Source of the DNA: Convolutriloba macropyga
Lineage: Eukaryota
Assembly: GCF_964194025.1 (NCBI RefSeq)
Contig: NC_134474.1
Location: forward strand, 54,250,001-54,314,000
Direction: 5' to 3'
DNA: 64,000 nucleotides
Shown: piece by piece, positions 3 to 45,694 of the stretch
Position numbering within the stretch: position 1 is the first letter of the stretch
How the letters are laid out: each line of letters starts with the position of its first letter
The notes under the pieces: generated by a model
Seen by the model: the letters and a program-made list of their open reading frames with translations, nothing else
What the model was told of the DNA's origin: nothing
Databases searched by the model: none
Translations under genes and position numbers: made by a program

Positions 3-515
3 GTGATTCGGCACGACGTTATCAATAATACGCTGACACCTCAAAAGAAAACAGAAGCCTGTCCCATATCAGAATTATTATCAATTCTCCAAAAGTACAA
101 AACCCGTATCGAAGCCATTGTATATATTCAACGGTTTGGAGCTCCTCTGGCTCTCAGCCAGTTGAGGTCAACTGGAATCGTAGTTATCAAAGCTTTCAAG
201 AAGCTCATATCACACCGAAATAGAGAGAACGCCACGTTAATTAACGATTTAAGTCAACTCCATCCGTCAGTCAAATCGGAAGCTCGTCTGCTGTTTGTGG
301 TTTGGAAGAAAAGAGCTGAACTAGACAATTTTGGACCCAAGCAATTCAAAAAGTTTAGGCAGAAACCCAAAAAGAACATGCCCTCAAAGAAGCAACGACT
401 GAAAAAGAAAACAACAGGCAGCTTAAGTAAGTACTCTGTGTTCACACTGAGCCTTCTAGATCCTTTTTTGGTGGGGAGGCGAGGTTTGAGCATTTGTACT
501 TGCGACAATGCCTGA
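3..515 (+). CDS. ORF0 of LINE D: C-terminal part of an SGNH/GDSL-hydrolase-like protein with a Lys/Arg-rich tail (5' truncated by window edge)
   Basis: Open 170-codon frame; HDVINN, IEAIVYIQR, LHPSV align with the ORF at 44653-45132(-); its stop overlaps the ORF1 start (ATGccTGA, 508-515). The SGNH assignment is inferred from motif spacing. Confidence 0.65.
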   Translation: MIRHDVINNTLTPQKKTEACPISELLSILQKYKTRIEAIVYIQRFGAPLALSQLRSTGIVVIKAFKKLISHRNRENATLINDLSQLHPSVKSEARLLFVVWKKRAELDNFGPKQFKKFRQKPKKNMPSKKQRLKKKTTGSLSKYSVFTLSLLDPFLVGRRGLSICTCDNA

Positions 516-1487: not shown

Positions 1488-4322
1488 GTAAGAGGCTCGC
1501 TCAAGCTGCTCCTACTAAATGTTAGAAGCTTACTTAATCTACAAAAGCGAATTAAACTAGTTGATTTTGTCTTGAAACACTCATTTGATTTTTTTCTACT
1601 AACCGAAACATGGCTTACAAGCGACATCAAGAGCTCAGAACTGCTCCTATCTCAATATAATGTAGTTAGGGCTGATAGAAAGTCAAAGAACGAAAAATCT
1701 AAGCACGGAGGACGTCTGATAGCAGTACCAAACAACGTCGGCTTTACTGAAGTAGATATTAGCCACCTTCCAGATGCAATTCAAGAATCCCTGGTAGTTA
1801 TTAAACTAAACCAACCTGACCCAGCCGTAATAGCTCTTTTCTATAACCCACCAAAAGGGTGCTATTTTTTGCCTTCTATCAGTTTTCGCTAATCAAAAAA
1901 TTCTCTTTGCTGGTGATTTTAACTTACCCGGGATAGATTGGGACATATACCAATCTAATGATGCTTATGAAGACTGTTTTGTAAACAAACTTGTCGACGC
2001 TAATTTCAAGCAATGTATTGGTTTCAACACCACCAAATCATCCTGTTTAGACTTAGTCCCAGCCAATGATGAAGGTTTGATAACTTCAATTAATAGATTA
2101 GACGATTTAAAAGACTACTCTGACCATTTTCCAATTCAAATCGAAATAACTAGTGGATCAAGAGAGCCTCAAAAGAAACAAGAAGTGTACTTTAGCTATT
2201 GCAATTGTGATTTCGATTACCTAAATGAGCTCATTGCAAACAATCCTTTTGACCCCTACTGTTACAGCAGCATAGATAAAACCACAGATATGTGGTACGA
2301 TAGGATCTTTCATCTGATAGAAAAAACTACGCCTAGAAGAACTCGACGGAGACAAGAGCTTCCGCCTTGGGTATCATCTTAAACATCGCACAAATTAAAC
2401 AAACTCAGGACACTAAGACGTAAATCGGAACGTTGCGTGAATTTCTCTCCTTACCTAGCCACCCAATTAAGAAAACTAGAAAAACATTTTGCTATCCTGC
2501 AAGAAAGAGACAGACAAGAATACGAAGAAGAAATAATTTCGAGCAGAAACAGATCTAGAATATTCAAATATTTGAAAAGTTTCCAAAAAGAGAAATTCCC
2601 ACCAAAATTGTACATCTTGACTGGAATTCCATTGCACAAAACATCAAAGAAAAAGCAGAATTTTTCAACACGTATTTCTCATCAGTAGTTACTGATGAAA
2701 GTTATGAACAGATTGATGCTCCAGCTCTTCTCGAAGCTGCTGGACAGAAAATAAACTTCACCGAGAAACAAATTACCAAAGAACTGGAAATGCTGGTTGT
2801 CACAAAAAAGAGAGGCGCAGATGGCATTCCCCCAATTCTGCTTAAGAAAACTGCAAATACTGTTTCCAAATTCATTAAAAGTTTGTTCAACAACATTGGA
2901 AGGTTACACAATGTTCCCGGTTCGTGAAAGCATGGTTTGGTCTCACCAATATTCAAAGATGGTAATAAAAGTGAAGTGAAAAATTATAGACCTGTCACAC
3001 TGCTCAACATCATATCCAAAATTTTTGAGAAGTTAGTCTTGAAGTTTTTCGCAGAACATTTGTTGAATAACATTACATCCCGTCAATTTGGTTTTGTACC
3101 GCGGAGGTCTATAATCCTGCAGCTTATCTTGAGTCTGTCCAATATCTTTGAAAATCTTAGTGCATCAGAAGAGTTTTGTTTCCTACTGCTGTTTGACGTC
3201 TCTAAGGCCTTTGACAAAATAAAGCATTCAGTTTTGATGAAGAAGTTAGCAAGGATGAATATACCACGAAGTCTCTTTTTACTTATTAAAGATTATCTGA
3301 CTGGCAGAACACAAAGCGTAAATGTAGACGGCTACCAATCTGAGAAACGTCTGGTCTCTTGCGGAGTTCCCCAAGGCTCTGTACTGGGACCTATCCTCTT
3401 CCTGACCTACATTAACGACCTGCCAAATGTAGTCTTTTCATCTCTGGCACTCTTGTTTGCAGATGATTTAAAACTAATCCATTGTTCCAAAAATGACAGT
3501 CTAGACAAGCTGCAAGTTGACCTAAACAATCTCTACAATTGGAGTGTCCAAAACTGCCTCCTTTTCAATAACAAAAAGTGCTCTTTTACACAATTTGCTT
3601 TCGGGAGTCGTGTCGAGGAGGTTGTACTCTCTCTAGAAAATAATTTGATCCAAGAGAAGAGGGTCGTTAAAGATCTTGGGCTAACTATAGTCGACACCCT
3701 AAATTGGATAGAAAATGTGCGGAATCGAATAGCGAAAGCAATGAAGGCGTTTTATCTCATTCGAAGGAACACAAGCTGCCAAATTTCTATGAAAACTAAG
3801 GTTCACTTATATAGAGCTACTATAAGCCCGACATTAATGTTTGCATCTGAATGCTGGGAGCTAAAGCGAAACGAGTATGAAATTGTAGAGCGGTTTAATA
3901 AAAAGGTCATGAAATGGATGACAAACAGAAATTGTTACAAAGAAGCTATTGTTCAAAGCAATATACTGCCACCACTCTACTTTAAAGTCCTAAAAGAACT
4001 TCTACTTTTTAGCAGCATAGTGTCAGGAAAATACTATGTCGACTTGCGCAACTATTATGTTATTCAATTGGCCGGAAGAAGTTCTAGGGTTATACTGCCA
4101 GAGATTCGATACGAAGCTCAGAGACTCAAATTTTGGTATAGAACTGGATTTCGGGTGAACATCCTCCAAAGGAAAATTAACTTCTTTGACAACATTAATT
4201 CGAAAGGAAGACTTCTAGAATTGATGTGGAAATTTTTCAATGAAAACTGGGCTGAGAATAATTTCTGTAGTTGGATCTTTTTGTGCCTGTGCCAAAACTG
4301 TCGTGCAAATTCTATGTTATAA
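1488..4322 (+). pseudogene. LINE D ORF2: AP endonuclease + reverse transcriptase, several frameshifts/stops in the 5' half; RT portion 2937-4322 open
   Basis: APE begins in frame straight after the ORF1 TGA (VRGSLKLLLLNVRSLLN..FLLTETWL); RT motifs in the 461-aa ORF. Confidence 0.93.
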
Positions 4323-4380
4323 ATCCGGGACTTATACTCCCCGTGAAATTGTCACAAAGCCATAATAATAATAATAATAA

Positions 4381-4930: not shown

Positions 4931-4962
<32 letters not shown>

Positions 4963-4966
4963 TATT

Positions 4967-5004
<38 letters not shown>

Positions 5005-5006
5005 CA
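4931..5006. repeat. (TA)n microsatellite running into an assembly gap
   Basis: Direct reading; N gap at 5007-5206. Confidence 0.97.
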
Positions 5007-5206
5007 NNNNNNNNNNNNNNNNNNNNNNNNNNNNNNNNNNNNNNNNNNNNNNNNNNNNNNNNNNNNNNNNNNNNNNNNNNNNNNNNNNNNNNNNNNNNNN
5101 NNNNNNNNNNNNNNNNNNNNNNNNNNNNNNNNNNNNNNNNNNNNNNNNNNNNNNNNNNNNNNNNNNNNNNNNNNNNNNNNNNNNNNNNNNNNNNNNNNNN
5201 NNNNNN
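5007..5206. other. Assembly gap (N run)
   Basis: 200 Ns. Confidence 1.
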
Positions 5207-7019
5207 TATTGGTGCTTTCCTCTCCACTTGTTAGTTATTTTTGTGACTGGGCCATCTTTACACTGTCTGGAGGGGAACAGCTTGGAGTGCAGCATCCGGC
5301 TAAGTGCTACTGATCATCCCTTATTTTCCGACCTACATCCATCGTTGCCGAATGGTGTACACGGTCATTTTTATATATTTAAAAAACAAAGAGAGTAGAT
5401 AGAGTTATACGATTGAAGATTATGAAATCTGGGTCACCTGTCTACCTCTTTTTAAAAACAAGCCATCATCTGATGTGGATATCGAATTTCACAACAAAGC
5501 TGGAGCACAAATGTGAGCACGGATTCTGATTTTTAAATAAGACATTTTGAACGTACTTTACTAATAGAACGTGTAACATTATTCATTTGCCGACGAGTGG
5601 GGGAAAATACTGGATAGTCTTTGCAAAAAAAATCAAATTCGCCCCAGCTTCCACAAATGTCGCTGTGCCGTTTGCAGATGTTAAACGTAACTTAGAACAG
5701 TTGCTTTGAATCATATCTTTTTTTTACCTCTACCTTCTGTAAAGGCCTTTTTTAGCACTGTCAAAAATCTTTCAATGGTATATTTAAGTATTTAACTACT
5801 ACTACTGCCAAAATTGAAGACCAATAGAATTTCGTAGTAAATTGCTCTCTTAATAAACATACAAAAACTCACTCAAGAGTGCTTTTACACCTTTGGCTCT
5901 GGTAACTAGGACTCAATGCCAGACACACGGTCATGGTTTAAAACAGTGTGCTGCAGTAATTTAAATCTAATAAACACTCCGAATTCCCAAAAAAATGCTA
6001 TCAAACAAAAACAATGTGTGCAATGCGAATGCAGCGCGTCCCGATATGGTACACTCCAAAACGTCTACTTTTTCTCAAAATTGTCGAAACACAGAGAATA
6101 ATTTAGGACCTCGCCCGGCCGCTTAATGAACGCAAAGATCATTGGAAATAAAGGAACTATTGTTTGCAGACACAAAGCGTGACAAAATTGAACACCAAAA
6201 AATTCCAACTAGCGTTCAGCTTTTCAATAGCTGATTCTTGACACCATGAGATTCCTGAAACCCTGAGGCTTTGCAAAACAATATGAAGCGTGCAAGAGAA
6301 AGTTTATCTTTTCAGCCACTTTACTTACCTATTAGACCATTTGAGGAACCATTTCCTCCAAACAAAATTTTCTCTCTTGAAATAATACACTCTTAAAGAA
6401 ACTGACGTGAAAAAATTAAAATACCAGACAAAAAACATTTGGTTTTCTACTGGCGACTCCTGGAATCTTTATGATAGGCGTATGACATCACCTTTAGATC
6501 AACCAAAAGACTGAAAACAATAATAAAAATAATTTGAATTTACAACATGTTGAGGGGACTCTCGTCCCGAATTAAAAGTTTGAGTTTACAGTTTCGGCAT
6601 CCGCAAGCAATTCTCCATGAACACAGGTTGTTTTCGCTAAAGTTTTCAGTGAAGTATCACCAGAATATTCGAAGTAACGATGGTTTCAGCCCAATAGGTC
6701 TTGTAATGTCAATAGATGGAAGAAATGATAATAGTCGATTTGTGCGAACAAAAAATTCGTTGCGAGATGAGTCAAATCGTGGTTTTCTGCAACTTGGAAT
6801 TTTTCTTTTTTTCTCGTCTGAGTCCATCCTTCAGAGATATGAAGTCCTCCCAACAGAGATCGTATGCTCCATTGCATTTCTTTGTCAAAGTGAGAACGTC
6901 CAGCATTTCGAGGTAATGGAATAGGAGCACCTCTATAAAGAGTAAGCACTCTTTGTAGTCACTAATGGTTGGCAGAATGGAGCAGTTCTAACTTCATGTC
7001 GCCTCTTGAAGCGTACCAA

Positions 7020-7060
<41 letters not shown>

Positions 7061-7175
7061 AGAGACGTAAATTCCAACAAAAGGAATACATAGTAAAAGA
7101 AAGACATGACAGTACAAATTAACAAAGCACAGTAGCAAATTAAGATCTGCAGTCCACACAGCGACATTTAAGAAA

Positions 7176-9985
7176 TTATGTACATGGCCGATAGTAATTA
7201 AAAGAATGTGTTTTGGCTATGAGAAAATTATCTAAATTCTTGCAAAAAATTTTGAAAGATGACCTAAAGTCAATGAGGTTGATAGAAATTAAGTAATTGG
7301 CGGAGTGGATAGTTCGACTAAGAAAACAGTTGTCAGTTTGGATTTTTTTGTTCAACGGTTGTTCAAAAAAGGTTTTGACTGATCCTCGGGAGCTGAGTGT
7401 CGTACTATTGACATGTAGCTTTAAGTCACTCTCCATTGTTTCATGCCAAGTTTTCCATAGTAGAATAAGGTCAGCTCGCGCAATTTGATAGCAAATTGGA
7501 TACAAATTTAGTTTTGAAAGTGTCTCGTTGTAATCCTCAGACCTAATAACCCAGCGCAACACTTTGCGCTGAAAGTTTTCTAACACTTTCAAAATACCAG
7601 CTGTAACACACCAAGCTTGGGAGCAGTAAAGTAGCACAGCTAAAATCATCGTTTGGTACAACGGTTTCTTGCGGAGAATAGAAACTTGAAACGGTATATT
7701 TCTTTTCAAAAAATTAAAAATTTTATTACATTTCGCAAATTTCATCTTAACATGTGTTGTCCAACAGAAATCTTCAGTAACTAGCATTCCCAAACCCATA
7801 ATCTCTCTAGTGAAAAGAATTTCCGCTTCTCCTAGAAATAAAGGAGATTGGCTGCGTTTAAAGTTCATCGCTTTACACTTTTTTGGATGAAATTCAAGTT
7901 GACTTTTGCGTGACCATTCATAAATACCATTGATGTCAATTTGCAGACCTTCGAAACAATCAACGCATAGCAGCTTTAGGTCGTCGGCATATAAGTAAAC
8001 TTGGGAGTTTTGCAAATGGTCAACAAGATCGTTCATGTACAAGATAAACAGAAGTGGTTCAAGGACACTTCCTTGTGGGACACCAGATGTTACAACGGAG
8101 GGCCTAGAAAAACAAGATCCTCGACGGACAATTTGGTGTCGATCTTCGAGATAATCCGAAAAAAGATGAAGAAAAGCGTCGTCAAACCCAAATGCTGCCA
8201 GTTTTGTTAGTAATTTATGATGCGGAGCGGAATCAAAAGCCTTTTTGATATCAAAATAGACGCTAGCACAAGGAAAATTTTCGTCAGGATTGTTGTAAAG
8301 AACATCAAAATATGAAATAAGTTGAGTAGTTGTGCTGCGTTTCTTCATAAAACCGTGCTGAGCGTTTGTGACTAGCGGCCTAACTATCAGATACAAAAAA
8401 TTGAACATTTTTTTAAAAACAATAGAAAGCTTTGGAAGCAAGCTGATCGGACGATAGTTTATAACGTCACTTGTTGAACCATTTTTGTGCAGTGGTGTGA
8501 TATATGAAGTTTTCCACTCCTTAGGCCAATGCGAGGACTTTTGAATATTTTGAAATAATTCCATAACTGCTGGGGCTAAAACTTGACAGCCATCACGAAG
8601 CAAGAAAGATGGTACTTGATCTGAGCCCATGGAAGAACTGTCAACACATTTGCTCAATATTTTTTGAATTTCCAGAACTCCAAACGTAACATCTTGTAAT
8701 TCAATACTCGAATCTAAAGCTGTTGGAACATTTTTGTGAATTTTACAACCATAGACAGAGCTAAAAAAATCATTGAATGCATTTGCCTTTTTATCGTCAG
8801 TTGAAAAACTGACACCGTCGTAATTCATCACAGGCGGAAAAGCGCTAGTCTCTTTGAGATTCCTGAGTAGCTTGAAACAGTCATTCCTGCTCGTCAAATT
8901 ACATTTCTCAATAAGAAGACTCGTGCCAAGTTCAATTGACTCTGAAAGCTCTGTCTGACTTTCCCTCATTTTCAATGAGTCCGATAGTGTCCAATCTTTT
9001 TCCAGCCTTCTCTTGATTGTCGCGCTTTTATTTAACAAATGCATGGTTTGCGAAGAGTAGAAAAACGGAGCTGATACACGCTTTCGGCGTTTCTTAGCTA
9101 TCGAAACCGGGAACGCATTTTTTCAGCTCATAGTATCATAATGAAAAGAAATCAGAGGCTTTAATTTGGAAAGTTAGAAGTTCGTACAGCAAAAAAAGCT
9201 CTTGATTAAACGCTTGAATACTGAAAGATGATTTCGAGTAAGTAGAGATGCGTATACTTCTGTAATTATTGATGAGTGGAACTTGGAAAATTATTGGAAA
9301 GTGATCTGAGAAATGCTCTTTTGGGAGATGGAATGGAATTGACTCTAGAGAAGTGAAAATGAGATCTAGGCAGTTCCCACGAATGTGCGCAGCCTCATTA
9401 ATTATTTGATTTAGACCTAAGTCCGTGAAAAAATCCAATAAAACATTATCTGAAGAACTAGACGAGGAGAGACATGCCCAAGCTACCTTGGGCATGTTAA
9501 AATCACCTACAACATAGAGCTCGAAATTCGAATTCAGACCACGTTTAAGGCAGAATGTATTAAAATTGTTGATATAAAATGAAATCGATTCCATCAAAAT
9601 ATGATTGCTAAAGAAGAATTTCGAAGATGTTGGCGGTCTGTACACTACAATAAAGAAAACAGCTTTTTCTATTTTGACAACTGCACAAGCAGCTAAAAAG
9701 GGGTAACTGTCTTCTGATAAATCAAATACTAGATGGGACATAGCAGACGATGCTGCTATTAAAACTCCGCCATGTCCATCTTTTTTTTCTGTCTAAGCGT
9801 GAAATAACAGTGTGTGATCCACCAGGGAATATTTCAGAATCTGTAATCTGGTTATCGAGCAAAGTTTCTGTAAGCAATTTTAAGCTAATTTTTTCCACCT
9901 GCACTACTTTCAGCAATATTAATCGTTTTTCAAGACAATTGATAGATTGGCAATTTACAAGTAGACAATTAGCATTCGTTGTTAG
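7176..9985 (-). pseudogene. LINE A ORF2 (APE + RT), frameshifted in APE/linker; 622-aa RT portion open (7176-9044)
   Basis: VNCQS, LTET, VYRPP, GDFN, LDLIF, SDH; NYRPISLL, QHGF, DIKKAFD, GVPQGS, YADDLK. Confidence 0.93.
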
Positions 9986-10861
9986 TCAATTTACCGATTC
10001 ATTCAAGTTCACCAGGTTTTCCTGATAGAAAAGTTGTAAATTTCTGATTCGAAAATCCTTTTTACTTTTGCCTTCACCGATCATCTGAAATCTATTTGAC
10101 AGAATTCTCTTTTCCAATTCTCGATCGGATTGCGTCAAGAACTTTTTGATATTCACTGGAATGCGAAAATTTTTTAGATAATGGCTGCGTGCAAAACAAT
10201 TTTCCGTGAAATGTGGACTGTTTGTTGTAATCAGAATTGGTCTAAAAAGGCGTCTTTCATTGTTAGCAGGGTTTTTGAACTTTCCAAGGCGTCTTGCTTG
10301 CACAATATTTCCGTCTGATTTTAGACCCATAAAAGTGATAACCTCGTTAAGAAGCTTCCTGTCAGACTCTATAAGTTTGTTATAAGAATTTGCATTTTCG
10401 GGCAGACCGTTAATCAGAAACTGCATTGGCTCATTAGCCGTTTTGTGCCCCCTAAATTTCTTATTCGTTAGGACAGCATCACGAAAAGATGGCAAAGTCT
10501 CGTTGAAAACTTTTTCGAAATTGTCCTTGATATGATTAGGCAATGCTAGCTCAATAATTTTCGGTATTTCAGTACCGATTTTAGCAGACAAGGCAACAGC
10601 AACTTTGTCAGCAATTTTATTCTCATCTAAGGTCTTTGTCAACTTAGCTTCGGATGGGAAGAGCTGATCACTATCACAGGTATCACAAATCCATTTGCAG
10701 TTTTTCCTTGCTCCAAGCCAGTCCACATCGTCAACTGATAGAGATACACATGGACCACGGAACCAAAGCTCACACTTCTCGCATGATATTGCCGATTTAT
10801 CATTGTCTTTGATGTTCCATTTACACACACTGCACTTGCAAGGGTTTGACTGTCGTGTCAT
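9986..10861 (-). CDS. LINE A ORF1, PHD-finger protein, 291 aa (unit 1)
   Basis: CSVC..CEKC..WFRGPC..WICDTC (conserved His replaced by Arg); INGLPE, RRLGK, RPILI motifs. Confidence 0.9.
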   Translation of the reverse strand: MTRQSNPCKCSVCKWNIKDNDKSAISCEKCELWFRGPCVSLSVDDVDWLGARKNCKWICDTCDSDQLFPSEAKLTKTLDENKIADKVAVALSAKIGTEIPKIIELALPNHIKDNFEKVFNETLPSFRDAVLTNKKFRGHKTANEPMQFLINGLPENANSYNKLIESDRKLLNEVITFMGLKSDGNIVQARRLGKFKNPANNERRLFRPILITTNSPHFTENCFARSHYLKNFRIPVNIKKFLTQSDRELEKRILSNRFQMIGEGKSKKDFRIRNLQLFYQENLVNLNESVN

Positions 10862-13800
10862 TGTTTAGAGCATAACCAATATGAAACTATTTAATGAAAC
10901 TATTCAATAGGGCGATGCGTAGCTGATGACAGCGACGACTCTGCTTTTATACAGATTGAGCTTCGCACTAACTCTCAGCTTGGTGAAGACGTTCCTCCTA
11001 AGCAGATTGAGGGATCCGTATGCCTTGCCAGGCCTTCTCGATATGTTTTCTGACCATGACAGATTTGACGAAACTATGAGGCCCAAGGCCCGGTGACTAT
11101 TAATCGCGCCGTTTGACTCGTTGCAGAGCTTGTATTCGGGTTGCAGCCCCGAGACTATCAATATCTTGGTTTACTTGGGTGCAACTCCATTTTGTTGGCC
11201 AGTGACCAATTCTCCAGGTTTGCCAAGGATCGTTGAAGGGACGCACCGCTGGCTAAGAGCTTGCTGTCGTCTGCCATGAGGAACCATCACGAACAAATCA
11301 TTGATAGCTTCGGGAAGATCGTTTATGTACACCAAGAAGAAGAGCGGCGGTCCTAATCTACAGCCTTGGGGTACACCACTTTCTGATGACTTGGCATCGT
11401 CGATTTGAAAAACTGGTCTTCGATCATGTAAGTAGCTTTCGATTATTTTGAGCAATCGAGAACTGACTCCTAGAGCTTGAAGTTTTGCTACTAGAATGGA
11501 ATGATCCACTTTGTCGAAGGCTTTTTTCAGTTCTAAAGAGACAGCATGAATTGCCTTCGAGCTGTCCTTGCTCTCTGCGATTTTGTTCAGAGAGACCAGA
11601 AGCTGGAGTACAGATGATCTGCCTCCGCGAAATTCGAACACACTCGGAGATGTGGGGTTCAACAATTTCGAGTAGTTTGTTGTAAATGCATTTCACGAAA
11701 AATTTGCTGACACAAGATAACAAAGCAACAGGTAGTTAGCGACCTTGTCTTTGGCTCCTTTCGTGTGCAATGGCTTAATGCAAAAGAGTTTCCAGCATGA
11801 AGGGAATTTGTCGGTCTCTTTTGCTTTTCTGAAGATGGAGGACATGGAATTGGCTAACCCTTCCGCGCAAACTCCCAAGAAACATGGGGGAATGCCGTCA
11901 TAACCCGTTGCCTTAGTGATGTTGAGCTCTCTTAGTATTACGCATAGTTTCTCAGGACCTGTGTCAAAGTCACAAACGAGTGAATGTTGGAGGTTCTCAC
12001 TTTCGCATGTGCCTCTAGGGTTGTACACTGAGATGAAGTACTCATTGAACATGTTGGCTTTTTCTAGAGCTGTTCTGGCTTTCTGGTATGCTTATTTCAT
12101 TACAGGCGGTAGAACAAGTGCCCCTTTGACTCGCTTCAGATGTTTGAAGATTTTCTCTGTAGAACGTCCAGAAAAAAGATTGTCTTGATATTCAGATAGA
12201 TCCTCCTCAGACATGCGCTCCATATCAGGTTTCAGCTGCGCAAATTTGTATTTCAGATTTTCGGTTATTAAGCTTTTTTCAGCTCGGGTTTCTGCGGTTT
12301 TGAGCCTCCTGGTGACGTTGGAAATGGTTGCAGTAATCCATTGAGGCAGTGATGATCATTGTGCAATTTTTCTAGGAACAAATGTGTCCAATTTGGATTC
12401 TAACCATTCGTGCCAATGTTGAACCATCAGCGCAGGGTTTGTCCAGCAGTATGGAATGAATGGATCTTCTGTCAGTGCTTTTAGAATACCCTCTTTTTCC
12501 ATTTTCTTGAAATTAAAGAGGCATCTACTGTGTGATTCATTGGTGTCCTTCTGTGTGATTCATTGGACATCAAGGTGTGGATAAAGAGCGATTCGTGATC
12601 TGACATTGTCTGTCATCCAAGATTGGTGACGGATATGTGCTGACTGATACGATAAGTGATGGGCTATCTGATAAGCATACATCAAGAATGCGATCGTTTG
12701 TCTTGTTTAATTGAGTGAGATTGAAATCTAGAAAGATATCAACACACACTTGCTCACAAGAGTTGATTCTCGACATTTCGTCCCAGTTGACTGTTGATAA
12801 CTAATGTCCCCAGCAAGGATAATGAGAACCATGGGAAGCATAGAAGAAAGTGTGCTAAGAAGAGAACGAAAGAGGGCGGAGGGCCAGAGGTAATTTTAGT
12901 TGCGTGGAGGATTACAGACACAATGATTAATAAAAGAGGTTTCGCAGCCGCTGACGTTCTTGTTCTCAGGGAATGTAATTTCTTCGAAGTAAATTGAAGA
13001 GCAAAGTCCAATGAGAACTTCTCCATGTTGTCCATGATCTCTTTTGCTTCTAACCAAATGATAATCAGGTAAGAAAAGTTCCCCATCTTTAAAACTAATT
13101 TCAAGCCAGATTTCGCATAAACAAAGAATGTTAAATGTTTTCAGTGAAATACTGAAGGACCGGAGCGTTCTTATATTACCACCCACAAAAAGTGGTGACA
13201 AAAAATTATGATATCACAAATGAGATCACCCAACTCAAACTGGTGAACGAAAGACTGGATTATCAACGTCATAACGCATTTCGCTCCCTATAAACTTTGC
13301 TAAACATTTCGGCAAAGTGTCCCACACATAATTGTTCAGCAAACTGCAACAAGCTGATAGTCGCTTGATTAAAATGTGCGAAAAACCTCAAAAGTTGAAA
13401 ACATTGCATACGCCTCGGTTGCACAAAAATAGTGCAAACATCCACAACCACAGTATGAGTGGACTTCAGTTTGAGGGTGTTAACATACTGTTTCTATCAT
13501 CAGTAACGTAGGTGAGAAATTGGATCTGTTTTTGATACCATTTTGAAATTTATCAAGTTTTAATAGATTTTTGTTTCAGTGAAAGGCTCGATCATTAATC
13601 CAGTATCCAGGTTTAAAGACTAATGGAATATACAAGGCAGAAGAAAAAAGTGAAGTTTTAATGGTCTCACATAGTGTTCCAATGAATCAGTTTTGTTACT
13701 GCATTAATGACCTTCAAGATATATTTCAATATTTCCTGATAAAAAAATCAAACACAACTTGTAAAATGTCGTGATTATCTAGTCTTGAAGCGTTTAAAAT

Positions 13801-15718
13801 TATGAAACTCCAACAACAAACTTCAGTTTGCTCAAAGAACTGTTTCCTATCATTCTGGGATCCAACAGGATTTTAATTTGAATAACAAATCCCAGCCTAT
13901 ATATATTGGTGCTTTCCTCTCCACTTGTTAGTTATTTTTGTGACTGGGCCATCTTTACACTGTCTGGAGGGGAACAGCTTGGAGTGCAGCATCCGGCTAA
14001 GTGCTACTGATCATCCCTTATTTTCCGACCTACATCCATCGTTGCCGAATGGTGTACACGGTCATTTTTATATATTTAAAAAACAAAGAGAGTAGATAGA
14101 GTTATACAATTGAAGATTATGAAATCTGGGTCACCTGTCTACCTCTTTTTAAAAACAAGCCATCATCTGATGTGGATATCGAATTTCACAACAAAGCTGG
14201 AGCACAAATGTGAGCACGGATTCTGATTTTTAAATAAGACATTTTGAACGTACTTTACTAATAGAACGTGTAACATTATTCATTTGCCGACGAGTGGGGG
14301 AAAATACTGGATAGTCTTTGCAAAAAAAATCAAATTCGCCCCAGCTTCCACAAATGTCGCTGTGCCGTTTGCAGATGTTAAACGTATCTTAGAACAGTTG
14401 CTTTGAATCATATCTTTTTTTACCTCTACCTTCTGTAAAGGCCTTTTTTAGCACTGTCAAATATCTTTCAATGGTATATTTAAGTATTTAACTACTACTA
14501 CTGCCAAAATTGAAGACCAATAGAATTTCGTAGTAAATTGCTCTCTTAATAAACATACAAAAACTCACTCAAGAGTGCTTTTACACCTTTGGCTCTGGTA
14601 ACTAGGACTCAATGCCAGACACACGGTCATGGTTTAAAACAGTGTGCTGCAGTAATTTAAATCTAATAAACACTCCGAATTCCCAAAAAAATGCTATCAA
14701 ACAATAACAATGTGTGCAATGCGAATGCAGCGCGTCCCGATATGGTACACTCCAATACGTCTACTTTTTCTCAAAATTGTCGAAACACAGAGAATAATTT
14801 AGGACCTCGCCCGGCCGCTTAATGAACGCAAAGATCATTGGAAATAAAGGAACTATTGTTTGCAGACACAAAGCGTGACAAAATTGAACACCAAAAAATT
14901 CCAACTAGCGTTCAGCTTTTCAATAGCTGATTCTTGACACCATGAGATTCCTGAAACCCTGAGGCTTTGCAAAACAATATGAAGCGTGCAAGAGAAAGTT
15001 TATCTTTTCAGCCACTTTACTTACCTATTAGACCATTTGAGGAACCATTTCCTCCAAACAAAACTTTCTCTCTTGAAATAATACACTCTTAAAGAAACTG
15101 ACGTGAAAAAATTTAAAATACCAGACGCTAAACATTTGCTTTTCTACTGGCGACTCCTGGAATCTTTATGATAGGCGTATGACATCACCTTTAGATCAAC
15201 CAAAAGACTGAAAACAATAATAAAAATAATTTGAATTTACAACATGTTGAGGGGACTCTCGTCCCGAATTAAAAGTTTGAGTTTACAGTTTCGGCATCTG
15301 CAAGCAATTCTCCATGAACACAGGTTGTTTTCGCTAAAGTTTTCAGTGAAGTATCACCAGAATATTCGAAGTAACGATGGTTTCAGCCCAATAGGTCTTG
15401 TAATGTCAATAGATGGAAGAAATGATAATAGTCGATTTGTGCGAGCAAAAAATTCGTTGCGAGATGAGTCAAATCGTGGTTTTCTGCAACTTGGAATTTT
15501 TTTTTTTCTCGTCTGAGTCCATCCTTCAGAGATATGAAGTCCTCCCAACAGAGATCGTATGCTCCATTGCATTTCTTTGTCAAAGTGAGAACGTCCAGCA
15601 TTTCGAGGTAATGGAATAGGGAGCACCTCTATAAAGAGTAAGCACTCTTTGTAGTCACTAATGGTTGGCAGAATGGAGCAGTTCTAACTTCATGTCGCCT
15701 CTTGAAGCGTACCAATAG

Positions 15719-40090: not shown

Positions 40091-43000
40091 TCACTGAATG
40101 ATTTGCTTGTTCACTTTTCCAATCGCCTCTATGAACCTGCTGAGGGATTGAGAGTCATCGTAAGTCAGATTGAGCTCTTCAATGCTCTCTGGTCTGTAGT
40201 GGTCCCACAGACGGCAATAGAAACAATGAGTCGAGTTTTCCTCAGCTGAGCCGCACATACACAGGTGTGATGCACTCTAACTCAATCTCCATTCTGAGAA
40301 AAGAGGGTTGTTACCAAAAACAAGGCTGCCTTTTCTATTGGCTAAGAAAAGGATTTCCAAGGATCAGGGGGCTCCTGCTGTGGCAGTCTGGCTTTGTATT
40401 CCTAAACATTCTCAGGACAGCAAAGTCATCAGGTGAGGACCATCTTCTAAGCCACAGTTCACTGATGAAAGCAGTGACCGACTGAGTACTACATCCTTGT
40501 GAAGGACAGTTACCCGTGACATTTTCGAATCGTCTCAGACAGCTTTCGAGGAGATGACCTGTCGATCGCGTGTGACCAGGTGCGTTGAAGTGAGCTTCAG
40601 CCACTATATCCGGTTGATTCCGTTTCATTTTTGTCAAAAACTTTGCTCTAATGCTCTGGAACAGAATATCTAGTGGGGGGATTCCAAGCAAGATTTCACA
40701 GGCAGACACTGGCGGAGATTTTTCGAATGAGAATGTGCACAAATTGGGGAAGCATAGATGATTTGCAGTTGGATAACGGTTTTGAAAAGGAGCGTCTGAG
40801 TGTTAAGTGTGAGATCCCATCGCTTCGAACATTTCCGCCGGTTTGAGTTTCAACTTTTCTGTCCTTTACTGATAGCATAGTAGAGATGATTCTTCTATGT
40901 CAGTTGTCCTGTAGATGAAAAATCCTAGTGACTTAGTGAATTCTTTCGTTTTGCACAATTGACCGTTAAGATAGATTGTAGATGGTATGGCCTCATCTGT
41001 GTGGAGTGACAATTTTTCTGTTTCTGATCCGTTCATTTTCATCGTCCAGTTGAAGCAACAACTTTCTATTGAATTGCACAAATTTCCAAGCTGATCTGCC
41101 AGTCTAGCTGGAGAATCCGCATGAACCAGCACCGATGTATCGTCTTCATATTTGAACACTTTGTGCGGGCTGATCAAGAAATTTTTGATAAATAAGATGA
41201 ATCGGATCGGCAATAAATAGCTTCCCTCAGGCAGACCGATTTGGATTTCGAATTCGTCAGAGCAAAAAGAGTCAATCTGAATGTAAGCTTGCTTTTCTGT
41301 TTCGTAAGAATGTTTATATGAGCTTCAAAAGATTATTGCTGAATCAATAGCCTTTGAGTTTATAGAGCAGACCGTTGGTCCAAACACTATCAAAGGCGTT
41401 TTCCATGTCGATATTTACTAGGGCGCTAGAGTGGCTATTTTTCAGCTTCTCCGTTTCAAGGTGAAGTTGGTACAGCAAACGAACTGTGCCTCTGCGAGAT
41501 CTAAAGCCTTCCTGGTGTTCTTCAAGAAAATTAAATCTATCGACGTGTCGTTTTAGTGTGTGCTCGATCATTCGCTCAAAAACCTTTCCAATATGGAAAG
41601 CGATTGATACAGGCCGATAACTGGAGGGGACATCGTATAGTTTTTTGTCACCTTTTTTAATGAATATCACTCTAGAGGCGTAGAGGTGTTCCAGGGCCAG
41701 ATATTTTTCCTAAGGCACATATTGAGAGTCTTCGTAGGATCTCTATAAATCTGGCGCCGACTCTCTGCAGCATTTTAGTATGTATCTGATCATTGTCCTA
41801 AAAAGAGGAGCGAAGGCAATTTCTTAGAGCGCGGACATGTTCGCATTCGCAGAAGCCTTTGGAGAGGGGATCGTTGTCCGTGGTATGGAAAAAGCTGGAT
41901 GAGGTGACTAATGCTTTGACGTCAGCATCGTAAACTCTATTGAACAATTTCAGTTTGAGGTGCCTAGCTTCGAAGAACGTTTTTCTGTATTCCCCAGCAA
42001 TTTCTTTGGGTGAGCAGAGGTATTTTGCTTTGTCGTCTTTTACTGGTCCGGACGTTCCAGCCTTGAGTTTGAAAAATCGGTTATATGCCGCCAGAAGTCT
42101 TTGCCTTTTTTTGTGCACCAGAACCATGAGAGTATCTGACAACCACTTAGAGGAGTGTTTGCTAAGAAGCATTTTGAAGTACTCTCTTGCTGTATCGGGC
42201 TTAGCCCCGTTACTTGGATTAGAGTGATACTTGAACTTTTTTCTAAGGTATCGGAGATTGTGACTGGCAATCGTGAGTTCATCGTTCCAAAACGGTTTGC
42301 TGTGTTTTTTGGTAGTCTTGAAGGGTATAGAACTATCGGTCGCTTTGCGGACAATTTTTACAAGTTTTAGCCAGAGGGCGGTGCGATCAGCTTCTTGTAT
42401 GATTTCTAGTTTCCTTTCGATAAATTCACGCCATTCTTCACTTTTTTTTTCACGCCATTCTTCTCAATGGTTTTCTTTGAGAGCGGAAGGTTATTGAAGG
42501 GCGGCTCAAAACGACTGTGACGGGTGTAGGCCCCCTTTTGGGAGCCCCGGTGAAGCGCTCAACATCTTCATCGGTACCCAGAGTGAAGGTTTGGCTGGTG
42601 ATTTTTCCCGATATCAGGCATAGGTCAATGGCGCTGTTAACGTTGCAGGCTAGAAAAGTGGGCTCACCTTGTTGAGGATTTTGACACTTAAGTCAAGTTT
42701 TTCGTCTTGTACATCAACATGGGGTTAACTTTGGAATTACTCCAGTTATTATGTCGGGCGTTACAGTCACCTAGTAAGAGAAGCCCTTCCAGCTTATGGT
42801 ACTACACATACTCTTGAGCTTTTCTGTGCTGAGAAGGCCATATTTTTAACAGCGTTACTGAGTTGGGGCAAATATACGCCGTTGTGGCTAGAATTTTTAC
42901 ACTTTTTATCAAGACGACGATCCAGACAATATCAACCTCAAGTATTTCCAATTCTAAAATCCGAGTGTATGAGATACTCTCCAACAACAAAATGACAACG

Positions 43001-43182
43001 CCTCTATTATCGTGGGAACATTCGGCAATGAAGTTATCAAAATCATTTTTCTCAACAAAGGTCCTCGTTTCGTTGAGAAATCAAAGAGACTGTTTCGTAT
43101 TGTCCAGATATTAAGTTAAGCAGTGATCACTCAGTCCGTTTATATTCAGTTCCAAAAATTTACGTTCATTACCACCCGTCAT
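40091..43182 (-). pseudogene. LINE C ORF2 (APE-RT-CCHC), many frameshifts
   Basis: Starts MTGGNERKFLELNINGL (ATG at 43182, overlapping the ORF1 end); fragments 42802-42990, 41344-41670, 40866-41213, 40335-40742. Confidence 0.85.
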
Positions 43183-44362
43183 TTCCGATAGGGAGATGAT
43201 TCATCAGTTTTTGGATATTGGTTGGCAGGGTTGTACCTCGCGATGAAAATAAGTTTGATATACATTTCAGTTATGAGGGGCACTCAGTCGCATCAGCTTT
43301 GTGATTAGCGTTGCAGTTAGCACAATAATGAGGACTATTCTTTCTATCAAAGTTTTTGAAGTTGTGGTTGCCCGAGCAATGATCACATCGAGGTGTTGAC
43401 TTGCAGTTTTTACTAACACGCCCAAAACGTTGGCACTTAAAACATCGCAGGACTTGTATCGAACGTTGTTAGAAAATGATTGGTCTGTAAAACAAGCTTT
43501 CGATGATGATGCCAACTCTGATTGCCCTTTCCGCGTCGTTGAGGTTTTTGGCAACAAACTTAACGGTTTCCAGTTTAGTTCTGTCTTTTTTGATGAACCT
43601 GGATGCTTTTATGCCTTCGAAATCATTCGCCAGGAGCTTATCGATTTTCGAGTCTTCAAGTTCAGTGTGGGTATGCCTTTGATGAGCAGGCTAATGTTTG
43701 GTTTTTCGGGGTCAACTGCCTTTTTGAATAGCGTTTAAGAGCCGACGAAGTTACTCTTCCAAGAGGTCAAAAACTTCTTCCGCCTCGTGTTTCGTGAAGA
43801 ACTCTAGATGTATGTTGCATCGAACCGTGTGAAACGCAAACAGTAGTCGCTTGAGAGGGAAATGTTTAGAAATGTCCTATTTGATAACTACACTGTTTTC
43901 GCAAGAGTTTTTGACACGATTAGGATTTTTGACAGGTGTCTTGATACTGGTTTATCAAACAGTCTTGTTTTTTGTCGCGGCTTGAGCAGGGACAGCGGCA
44001 TTGTCCTTCGTTTTCTCCGCAAAAGTTGGCTTTGTATCTATTTGGGCTTGAAAGGCTTGTATAGTGGCAGTCATGTCTTTGATTTGGTTCTGCATTTCCA
44101 GTAGCGTGGCATTGTCGCAATTTCATTGATCTACAAAACCACCACGTTTTTGGATCAAAAGCTTGAATTGGTCTTGTTGAATGACAATACATTGCTGGGA
44201 CACGCAGTTTTTGCATATCCTTTGTACGGAGCCGTATTTCGCTCGAACAGTTAGATCCGCAGAGTCAATGTTGGCACAAGAACCATGTAGCCACTCTTGG
44301 CATTTATCACAACAGATAGCAAGGTTGTTGTTTCTGTCGAAGTTTTCCAACATTTTTGGCAT
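43169..44362 (-). pseudogene. LINE C ORF1: N-terminal PHD + C-terminal gag-like zinc knuckles
   Basis: ICCDKCQEWLHGSC..RICKNC; manual translation of 43280-43460 gives RCFKCQRFGRVSKNC-RCDHCSGNHNFKNF-CANCNANHKADATEC. Confidence 0.85.
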
Positions 44363-44487
44363 TTATCATCAGAAGTTGAAGTTAGATTGGCCCCCTCATG
44401 GTGAATTCTCGCACCCTCACCCCTGCAGGCAACTTCGGGATAGCTATATCCCTTTAAAGTCATCGTTACGGAAAAAGGAGAGAAAAC

Positions 44488-45132
44488 TCACCTAGGCTTG
44501 AGAGAGAGCCGTTTCTTCTTGCGGAATCTGGACTTCTTGGACTTCTTTTTCTGCCTTGTGACACCTGGCTGGGTCTGCCGATTATTGGGTCGGTTTTTCT
44601 GAATGAGACTTTGTAAGTTGTGTAATCATCTGAGGATAAGAGAGCTAAGTGTTTACTCGATGGTAACTGCCGGGTGAGTGTTGGTGAGGTTCTCCACAAA
44701 CTCACGGTTTCTCCGGGTCGGCTGAGTCAGTAGGTGTTTTGTGACCTGAATCACTAAAATTTTCGTTGATTGAAGTGCCGTTAGAACATTCGGAGCCAGC
44801 TTACGTTGCAGGTAAACAATCGCAACAATGTTGTTCTTCAGGCGTATCAGGTCTGCAACGAGAAACTGTACGGTGTAGGATTTCTGCGATGGTTTCCTAG
44901 GATGGCGCCAATCAGAGTTATTGATGGAGTCGTGCCAGATAATTAGTTTTTCCTTGGAAAGTTTGATGTATTGTTCTGCTCTCTGGTTAGGGTGGCATTT
45001 AGGGTGGAAGGTAAGACCGCTGACAGGTATAGTATGTTGCCTAATTGCTCGTTTGAAACCAATAGAGATCTCTTTGCTTCTGTCTTTAATAAGATAATTC
45101 AAGGAGCTGGCTCCTAGCAAAATAACCATCAA
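44488..45132 (-). pseudogene. ORF0 of LINE C: SGNH/GDSL-hydrolase-like protein with a basic tail (two in-frame stops after the 159-aa open part)
   Basis: ILLGASSL, SGL, WHDSINNS, IVAIVYLQR, THPAV; frame continues past the stops into RQKKKSKKSRFRKKKRLSLKPR*; homologous to 3-515. Confidence 0.7.

Positions 45133-45360: not shown

Positions 45361-45361
<1 letters not shown>

Positions 45362-45445
<84 letters not shown>
45362..45445. repeat. (TA)n microsatellite
   Basis: Direct reading, ~42 units. Confidence 0.98.
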
Positions 45446-45446
<1 letters not shown>

Positions 45447-45694
45447 CTGTCCAAAAGCTGAGAAATTTGATGAAACGAACAGCGAACTTGAGTAAAATAG
45501 TAAGATCAGAGTCCATAGAAGAAGCAGACAAACTCCATTTTAGAAAACGCATCAATTCTCAAAACTAACATGGAGCCTAAATGATTATTTAAATTGATGA
45601 TACTACCTATGTTAACTTACATATTGCCAAGTCATCACATAACCAAAAAATCCTTACGCTGAATCAACTCAAAACATTCCAGGAAAGTCTTGAA

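Follow-up and report, generated by a model that had tools for sequence, protein, structure and literature searches.

The stretch of DNA analysed here, 64,000 nucleotides of Convolutriloba macropyga (contig NC_134474.1, positions 54,250,001 to 54,314,000; hereafter the window), holds the remains of two long interspersed nuclear elements (LINEs), C and D, each with an additional open reading frame (ORF), here called ORF0, upstream of its ORF1. Very probably ORF0 is the first of three LINE genes, a divergent SGNH-fold accessory module that has been swapped between retroelement lineages.

A preliminary description of the window, made from its letters, had claimed that the ORFs preceding ORF1 in LINE C and LINE D are homologous, and this proved to be correct: 44653-45132 of the minus strand and 3-515 of the plus strand encode sequences that are 38% identical over 96 amino acids (BLASTP, E 3e-15). 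In both elements ORF0 lies in the same position and orientation, directly 5' of an ORF1 with a PHD finger, as had been stated. The motifs quoted in the description (WHDSINNS/RHDVINNT, AIVY, HPAV/HPSV and GASS) are real and fall on the most conserved columns of an alignment of 96 family members. Its account of the ORFs themselves has to be amended: both exist, but that of C contains two in-frame stops, and that of D is frameshifted at its 3' end and cut at its 5' end. Besides these two, tblastn revealed no further significant copy of ORF0 in the 64-kb window.

The gene order is best seen in related elements from other assemblies. ORF0 was examined in twelve genomic contexts, namely eight distinct LINE loci and four loci of BEL/Pao long terminal repeat (LTR) retrotransposons, and in all twelve it is the 5'-most gene, on the same strand as ORF1 or gag and immediately 5' of it. 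Three intact contigs of 5.2-5.35 kb from three samples (L003, L004 and L005) comprise a leader of 218-277 nt, an ORF0 of 193-204 amino acids, an ORF1 of 257-373 amino acids and an ORF2 of 950-990 amino acids with apurinic/apyrimidinic endonuclease (APE) as well as reverse transcriptase (RT). The element L002, which lies within a long genomic contig, has the same layout of 5' untranslated region (5'UTR), ORF0, ORF1 and ORF2, and L010 and L011 are additional LINE-linked copies. A PHD finger opens ORF1 in C, D, L002 and L004; in L003 and L005, ORF1 was called from a coiled-coil/RRM-like start, and tblastx detected similarity to the PHD region of D just upstream of the called ORF1 of L005. ORF0 is added to ORF1 and does not replace it; the three-ORF architecture proposed from the two window copies is present in the intact elements L002 to L005. 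L002 and L014 are two loci of one family whose similarity starts 232 nt ahead of the ORF0 ATG, a shared boundary that places ORF0 within the mobile unit.

Three contigs, each from a different sample, share a 31-nt motif, GCCTAATTGTTGTGATAAACTTATTAAATAG, which lies 100-140 nt ahead of the ORF0 ATG (L003, about 135-165; L005, about 70-100; L004, about 120-150, as reverse complement). The window does not contain it, even with three mismatches allowed. The motif may be a promoter element, a target site or some other repeat.

ORF0 is also carried by BEL/Pao LTR retrotransposons. In L009 a relative (protein P0016) lies between a 203-bp LTR and the gag-pol ORF. The two LTRs of this element (6680-6882 and 13061-13263) are 99% identical and have TG..CA ends; they are bordered by a 5-bp target site duplication (TSD), AATAC, and the 5' LTR is followed by the primer-binding site (PBS) TGGTGCC. 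The gag-pol product matches the Pfam families Peptidase_A17 (Pao; E 6e-50), DUF1759 (E 1e-37), RVT_1 and rve. L012 is a second genomic copy of this type of element with ORF0. L013, from another sample, contains ORF0 followed by an uninterrupted gag-pol of 1730 amino acids. A BEL/Pao element of another kind, L015, comes from an NCBI assembly; its ORF0 is 35% identical to that of L009 and lies inside LTR-like repeats. Between L009 and L013 the ratio of nonsynonymous to synonymous substitution rates (dN/dS) is 0.15 for ORF0 (dS 0.28, with 32 of 50 differences at third positions) and 0.16 for gag-pol. Purifying selection acts on the BEL/Pao-borne ORF0 as strongly as on gag-pol.

The LINE copy in L014 (10999-15606) is cut at about 10127 by an oppositely oriented BEL/Pao element with Pao peptidase, integrase and DUF1759, from which it follows that both types of element have been active in one genome.

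That ORF0 is an independent repeat or a host gene that adjoins LINEs by chance is exceedingly improbable. All twelve contexts are linked to retroelements, always in the same position and on the same strand, and ORF0 lies inside the LTRs and the TSD of L009 and inside the 5' boundary shared by L002 and L014. No point in favour of a chance neighbourhood was found, and for the loci examined it is refuted.

The distance between ORF0 and the next ORF varies from an overlap of 8 nt in D to spacers of 43, 79 and about 220 nt elsewhere, and the two ORFs share one frame in L002, L004 and L009 and are in different frames in C, D, L003, L005 and L013. Such variable frames and spacers argue for a separate cistron rather than a single recoding rule. 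In another reading ORF0 would be no gene of its own but an N-terminal part of ORF1 or Gag, to which readthrough of the stop codon or a frameshift would link it; the LINE would then be a two-ORF element with an esterase-PHD ORF1 protein (ORF1p) of the known type IV/III. We regard this as improbable. Apart from the three elements with a common frame, in one of which (L009) just one stop and one codon separate the two ORFs, it is favoured by a hairpin right after the stop that resembles readthrough or frameshift signals; it is opposed by the five elements with different frames and the range of spacers (-8 to about 220 nt), by downstream ORF1s that are complete in themselves, with an ATG and a PHD or coiled-coil start of their own, and by the conserved basic tail that ORF0 has for itself. 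Moreover, ORF0 and ORF1 have different histories (see below).

The hairpin just mentioned is stable and begins directly 3' of the ORF0 stop in five lineages. Its minimum free energy is -36.8 kcal/mol (z -4.8) in LINE D (427-503, plus strand), -33.7 kcal/mol (z -5.3) in L002, -36.8 kcal/mol (z -5.9) in L009 and -31.5 kcal/mol (z -3.6) in L013; L003 contains two copies with -23.0 and -28.1 kcal/mol (z -1.9 and -2.7). D and L003 have the core CTAGATCCTTTTTTGGTGGG in common, and this unit is present twice in L003. Between LINE C and L002, two independent lineages, 6 of 18 pairs are kept via changes on both sides. The hairpin appears to belong to the same cassette as ORF0, and it may act in termination-reinitiation or as a junction at which modules are joined.

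An exchange is indicated by comparing the histories of ORF0 and RT. The RTs of ORF0-bearing LINEs are 25-34% identical overall, those of the C type and the D type about 28%, and the latter two lie on opposite sides of the RT tree. The RT of LINE D groups with that of LINE E, another element of the window, which as seen has no ORF0, and the RT data reject a clade of D and L003 (approximately unbiased test, p-AU 0.007). From the ORF0 data, conversely, D and L003 belong together with a support of 100/99, and the RT grouping of L003 with L004 is rejected (p-AU 0.003). The two trees therefore conflict in both directions, which indicates that the module was exchanged. In LINE D, ORF0 with its spacer is 64% identical to L003 and ORF0 is 25% identical to that of L005, whereas ORF1 is 42-48% identical to that of L005 and has no similarity to that of L003. 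Since the homology between D and L003 continues through the ORF0-ORF1 spacer and ends about 30 nt short of the ORF1 ATG of D, the whole 5' module was swapped. C and L002, by contrast, agree in every part (48% identity of ORF0, co-linear similarity of ORF1 and ORF2, and the shared hairpin), which points to vertical descent. The ORF0s of BEL/Pao elements nest among those of LINEs, and a single BEL/Pao clade was not demonstrated (p 0.32). The preliminary description had suggested an exchange between two LINE clades or an independent capture by each; the reciprocal tests uphold an exchange, which extends further than it supposed, since BEL/Pao elements carry ORF0 too. The data support a swap of the 5' module, consisting of 5'UTR, ORF0 and spacer hairpin, between retroelement lineages.

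Less probable still than a fusion with ORF1 is that nothing was exchanged, that ORF0 was inherited vertically from an ancestor with three ORFs, and that the conflict of the trees stems from unequal rates, long branches or chimeric assemblies. The RT branches are indeed long and their support moderate, some of the contigs come from metagenome assemblers, and C and L002 show the agreement in ORF0, ORF1, ORF2 and hairpin that vertical descent would give. But congruence is rejected both ways, D shares ORF0 and spacer with L003 and ORF1 with L005, and ORF0 is also found in LTR retrotransposons, which have no vertical ancestry with LINEs at such a level; the positions of TSD and LTRs speak against a nested insertion of the BEL/Pao-linked ORF0.

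As to the clades involved, a knuckle of the form C-x(1-2)-C-G...H...C follows the RT in C and L002 and is absent from D, E and L003 to L005, and the distant relatives of the L002 RT include proteins with RT and RNase H, one of them fungal. The knuckle and these distant relatives fit an I-group affinity of LINE C. LINE D, with its ORF1 of PHD, coiled-coil and RRM-like parts and without a knuckle, fits a CR1-like element. PDB matches of ORF2 were discarded as a marker of clades, because only L1 and R2 are represented there.

A word-indexed search with ORF0 returned four relatives only; a profile search over all cluster representatives, however, brought the number to 476 clusters at E<=1e-3, of which 237 reach E<=1e-10. 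Most members stand alone, are 185-235 amino acids long and align from residue 1. All of them lack names, Pfam domains and UniProt sources, and two derive from NCBI assemblies. In the alignment of 96 sequences, whose members are 20-35% identical to the query, the near-invariant columns are A7, S8, G38, W65, H66, D67, N71, Y106 and H152 (A7 is conserved in 87 of the 96 sequences, H66 and D67 in 89 each, Y106 in 91). A typical ORF0 protein (ORF0p) has about 200 residues: an SGNH-like domain that begins with the initiator Met is followed by a C-terminal helix and then by a tail that is strongly basic, with a median of 45% Lys plus Arg. The family is large and nameless in databases. Weak Pfam matches to KaiA_N and TPR_ZFYVE26 were judged spurious. 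The feature search of the ESM Atlas gave unrelated clusters of low score only, and a scan of JGI metagenomes gave three short ORF0 loci without context.

The preliminary description had suspected an SGNH esterase in ORF0, and the structure prediction concurs. With the 96 sequences AlphaFold2 produced a model with a predicted local distance difference test score (pLDDT) of 90.4 and a predicted TM-score (pTM) of 0.80; with five sequences the pLDDT was 41. The model has five strands alternating with helices over residues 1-175, followed by a long C-terminal helix. In Foldseek searches of PDB and of Swiss-Prot models nearly all matches were SGNH/GDSL proteins (PAF-AH Ib alpha, GDSL-like lipases, IAH1 and TesA; probability 0.9-1.0, E about 2e-3). 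The clusters of the AlphaFold database (AFDB) were likewise SGNH, the top matches of two VIA-align runs were all SGNH hydrolases, and the result holds without the Foldseek prefilter (48,161 chains). The predicted model thus supports an SGNH-like fold.

The active-site blocks can be read directly from the alignment. Block I is G6-A7-S8-S9-L10, right after Met1 and strand 1, with S8 kept in 88 of the 96 sequences. The oxyanion-hole residues are kept as well, G38 of block II in xPGLS (89 of 96) and N70 and N71 of block III in HDVINN (75 and 92 of 96), and H152 of block V stands in LHP(S) in 88 of 96. The order and spacing of Ser, Gly and Asn are those of the esterase of zebrafish ZfL2-1 ORF1p (S143, G165, N195; PMC10792757). 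ORF0 hence retains in the right order all four residues from which the SGNH family takes its name. The earlier remark that Ser and His are kept and Asp is lost applies to the whole family.

A number of findings weigh against the proposal that ORF0 is an exchanged SGNH-fold gene. Neither the window ORFs nor any of the 96 members matches an SGNH/GDSL family of Pfam, and comparison of ORF0 with PDB chains including ZfL2-1 gave nothing below E 1, be it by phmmer with the single sequence or by hmmsearch with the profile. The structure is a predicted model, and its Foldseek TM-scores are just 0.41-0.48. The Asp of the GDS motif is replaced by Ala in 87 of the 96 sequences, and in block V the Asp is missing, the third position before the His being K, R, Q, S, A or T with no conserved acid among the 96 sequences; both changes make catalysis uncertain. 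Both window copies of ORF0 are broken. Selection on ORF0 is demonstrated solely for the copies borne by BEL/Pao elements, the LINE copies L002 and L014 giving a dN/dS of about 1 from 9 differences only, as is expected after insertion. In L004, L005 and L015 the hairpin falls short of significance. Several of the elements called intact are contigs from metagenome assemblers and possibly collapsed consensus sequences, and the names of the clades rest on indirect marks. Finally, the sequencing runs found for the organism were rejected as a source of RNA data, since 74-96% of an arbitrary intergenic stretch was present in them, and were taken as DNA.

The missing Asp bears on the question whether ORF0p is an enzyme. 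A possible, though unlikely, alternative is that the SGNH fold was kept without activity and that ORF0p is a basic scaffold for binding RNA or lipid, similar to the OSK domain of Oskar, that packages or localises the RNA of the element; the conserved Ser, Gly, Asn and His would then serve ligand binding or folding. In line with this are the change from GDS to GAS and the loss of the acid throughout the family, the strongly basic body and tail of ORF0p, and the properties of the ZfL2-1 esterase, which has a very low turnover and binds liposomes independently of its active site (PMC3905857). On the other hand, about 90% of the 96 sequences, which are just 20-35% identical, retain the four residues that give the family its name, whereas these are lost from SGNH relatives without catalytic activity, Oskar among them (PMC10792757). 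Furthermore, five solved SGNH structures have a main-chain oxygen in the role of the Asp side chain (PMC10792757), so that the missing Asp would be compatible with catalysis by ORF0p; the best matches of ORF0 in Foldseek include two of the five, 4M8K and 4NRD.

The blocks of the ZfL2-1 ORF1p esterase (4C1B) are 141-GDSIV, 163-FPGARV, 191-HVGTND-196 and D..LHPS-284 (PMC10792757), and the ORF0 consensus GASSL / xPGLS / HDVINN / ..LHPS is in the same register in all four. In sequence register, H66 of ORF0, four residues before the Asn of block III, corresponds to H191 of ZfL2-1 (H191-V-G-T-N195-D196). H191 is conserved only among transposon-encoded esterases, which was taken as a sign of a single origin (Schneider et al., PMC3905857). 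In ZfL2-1 this His is hydrogen-bonded by S228 (PMC3905857); the position in ORF0 equivalent to this transposon-specific Ser is by offset A103 (A, G, C or S in the family), with the invariant Y106 nearby. From the block register and the transposon-specific His it would appear that ORF0 is a divergent offshoot of the retrotransposon esterase stock to which the ORF1p domains of CR1, L2 and RTEX belong.

How ORF0 might spread and act can be outlined as follows. The 5' module would plausibly be swapped by template switching or recombination; replacement of LINE 5' ends is known. ORF0 would be translated as the first cistron and ORF1 or gag be reached by termination-reinitiation, with the hairpin helping or regulating this step. 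By analogy with the ZfL2-1 ORF1p esterase, which is hydrolytically active with low turnover and binds acidic phospholipids and liposomes (PMC3905857), ORF0p could be a low-turnover Ser-His acyl-esterase, a binder of acidic lipids or both, and bring the ribonucleoprotein of the element to membranes. Its basic tail may provide an extra affinity for RNA, for acidic lipids or for nuclear import. We put forward only tentatively, and as somewhat more probable than the scaffold without activity, that ORF0 and hairpin form a 5' cassette complete in itself, which passes horizontally from one class of retroelements to another, unrelated one (at least two deep LINE lineages and BEL/Pao) and spreads because it provides an enzymatic hydrolysis of acyl esters; the target would be a lipid, a glycan or a protein, and the hydrolysis a step needed by or beneficial to retrotransposition in the hosts.

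Esterase domains of retroelements have been described before. An SGNH esterase domain is part of the type IV ORF1p of CR1, L2 and RTEX LINEs and occurs in Penelope-like elements (PMC3905857, citing Kapitonov & Jurka 2003). ORF0 resembles the esterase of the ZfL2-1 type in that it is encoded by a retrotransposon upstream of the RT gene, has an SGNH fold as far as the model shows, shares the block register G-x-S / PG / H-x-x-x-N / LHPS, and has a basic segment nearby (ARM motifs in ZfL2-1, a K/R tail in ORF0). It differs in that the ZfL2-1 esterase is a domain of ORF1p after a coiled coil in the sole ORF ahead of ORF2, whereas ORF0 forms a first cistron of its own besides a complete ORF1, and its domain starts at Met1 with no preceding coiled coil. 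Besides, ORF0 has GAS in place of GDS, lacks the Asp of DxxH and has no evident counterpart of Ser228; it is missed by profile searches of Pfam and PDB and is present in BEL/Pao LTR elements.

In bdelloid rotifers a GDSL esterase is encoded by ORF3 of the Vesta LTR elements and of the Athena/Terminon Penelope-like elements, which was read as gene sharing (PMC5408684). Like ORF0, it is a stand-alone extra gene of the SGNH/GDSL type on different classes of retroelements. ORF3 lies downstream of pol in gypsy-like and Penelope-like rotifer elements and has the canonical catalytic residues (PMC5408684), whereas ORF0 occupies the 5'-most place among the genes of LINEs and BEL/Pao elements, its active site is devoid of Asp, and a spacer hairpin follows it. 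The OSK domain of Drosophila Oskar (PDB 5A4A) belongs to a germ-plasm protein of the host and has lost the catalytic residues; ORF0p is borne by transposons and has kept Ser, Gly, Asn and His.

ORF1s with PHD fingers are known as types IIC and IIIA/B of CR1 and L2 LINEs, and the evolution of ORF1 is reticulate (PMC4120745). In C, D, L002 and L004, ORF0 is followed by an ORF1 with a PHD start as in these types, and the modular shuffling of the 5' coding parts of LINEs is a theme common to that survey and to the case of ORF0. The survey, which dealt with two-ORF elements, recorded the esterase as ORF1 and solely in subgroups of vertebrate CR1/L2, and it reported no ORF upstream of a PHD ORF1 (PMC4120745). 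Already known are esterase domains of ORF1, shared GDSL ORF3s and the reticulate evolution of ORF1 (PMC3905857, PMC5408684, PMC4120745, PMC13343379). In full-text searches of the literature, with Repbase outside their scope, we found no description of an esterase gene that stands alone ahead of a complete ORF1 or gag, nor of the Asp-less GASS family or its presence in BEL/Pao elements.

The two elements of the window are dead relics of three-ORF elements. In LINE C, on the minus strand, the decayed ORF0 of the divergent SGNH-fold family extends over 44488-45129, with the ATG at 45129 and the final stop at 44488-90. The frame is interrupted by TAA at 44653-55 and TGA at 44626-28, both ahead of the K/R-rich tail, and ORF0 of LINE C is a pseudogene. 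The hairpin (44400-44492), which is the same as in the related L002, begins at the ORF0 stop, and about 125 nt separate the final stop from the PHD ORF. The start of ORF1 with the PHD finger (44123-44362; Pfam PHD, E 1.4e-5) is followed by a frameshifted remainder. Of ORF2 (40214-43557) a decayed APE/RT is left, with RT pieces at 41670-41344, 41213-40866 and 40742-40335 and, by its sequence motif, a CCHC knuckle after the RT at 40261-40214 (CMCGSAEENSTHCFYC). A long (TA)n microsatellite (45361-45460) lies just upstream of the presumed 5' end of LINE C.

An ENA contig that holds the database protein P0001 (L001) was considered as an independent copy of LINE C and rejected: its positions 6132-14142 are 95.6% identical to 47000-39000 of the window over 8 kb, flanks included, so that it is the same locus in another assembly. 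For this reason an apparent pattern in which the 5' end of LINE C was more similar than the rest was dropped. In L001 the first in-frame stop of ORF0 reads TAT (Tyr), and P0001 was called across a TGA, at odds with standard translation.

LINE D is on the plus strand. Its ORF0 (3-426) is truncated at the 5' end by the edge of the window; its ancestral stop, the TAA at 424-426, has gone out of frame, and the open frame extends to 515, the final 30 or so codons being a frameshift run-on as judged by homology with L003. ORF1 (508-1487), with an N-terminal PHD finger and then a region resembling coiled coil and RRM, is now split over three frames (508-891, 879-1076 and 1128-1487); the PHD finger in 508-891 is below threshold in Pfam (E 0.012), and its Cys/His pattern is present. 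ORF2 (1572-4380) consists of APE pieces at 1572-2382 and RT at 2937-4322, where an ORF of 461 amino acids is intact (RVT_1, E 3e-33). No CCHC knuckle follows the RT of LINE D, and the short 3' untranslated region terminates in a (TAA)n tail (4362-4380). Another long (TA)n microsatellite (4950-5006) lies beside the N gap that follows LINE D.

This gap (5007-5206) marks the left edge of an array (5207-39933) of four head-to-tail copies of an 8.69-kb unit that are about 99% identical; both a true tandem segmental duplication and an assembly artefact are possible. In each unit LINE E adjoins the 3' part of another LINE. LINE E, on the minus strand, has a PHD ORF1 (10861-9986), APE (9741-9136) and RT (9044-7176); as its 5' end abuts the other LINE, it may or may not once have had an ORF0.

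SGNH esterase is the sole enzymatic activity known from LINE ORF1 proteins. ORF0 represents a large, very divergent and unnamed probable branch of this enzyme type that behaves as an independent first gene, joining elements that already have a full ORF1 or gag; along with a structured spacer, it has been passed among LINE lineages and LTR retrotransposons. One accessory gene combined with different replication machineries amounts to a natural experiment on the role of the esterase in retrotransposition. Since ORF0 is invisible to Pfam-based annotation of transposable elements, three-ORF LINEs and four-gene BEL/Pao elements are probably mis-annotated. If ORF0 and its hairpin are indeed a mobile cassette with esterase activity, ORF0 would be a widely shared, previously unnamed retroelement gene of a standing comparable to that of the gag-like ORF1, and would open a way into the debate on what lipids and membranes do in the replication of LINEs and LTR retrotransposons.

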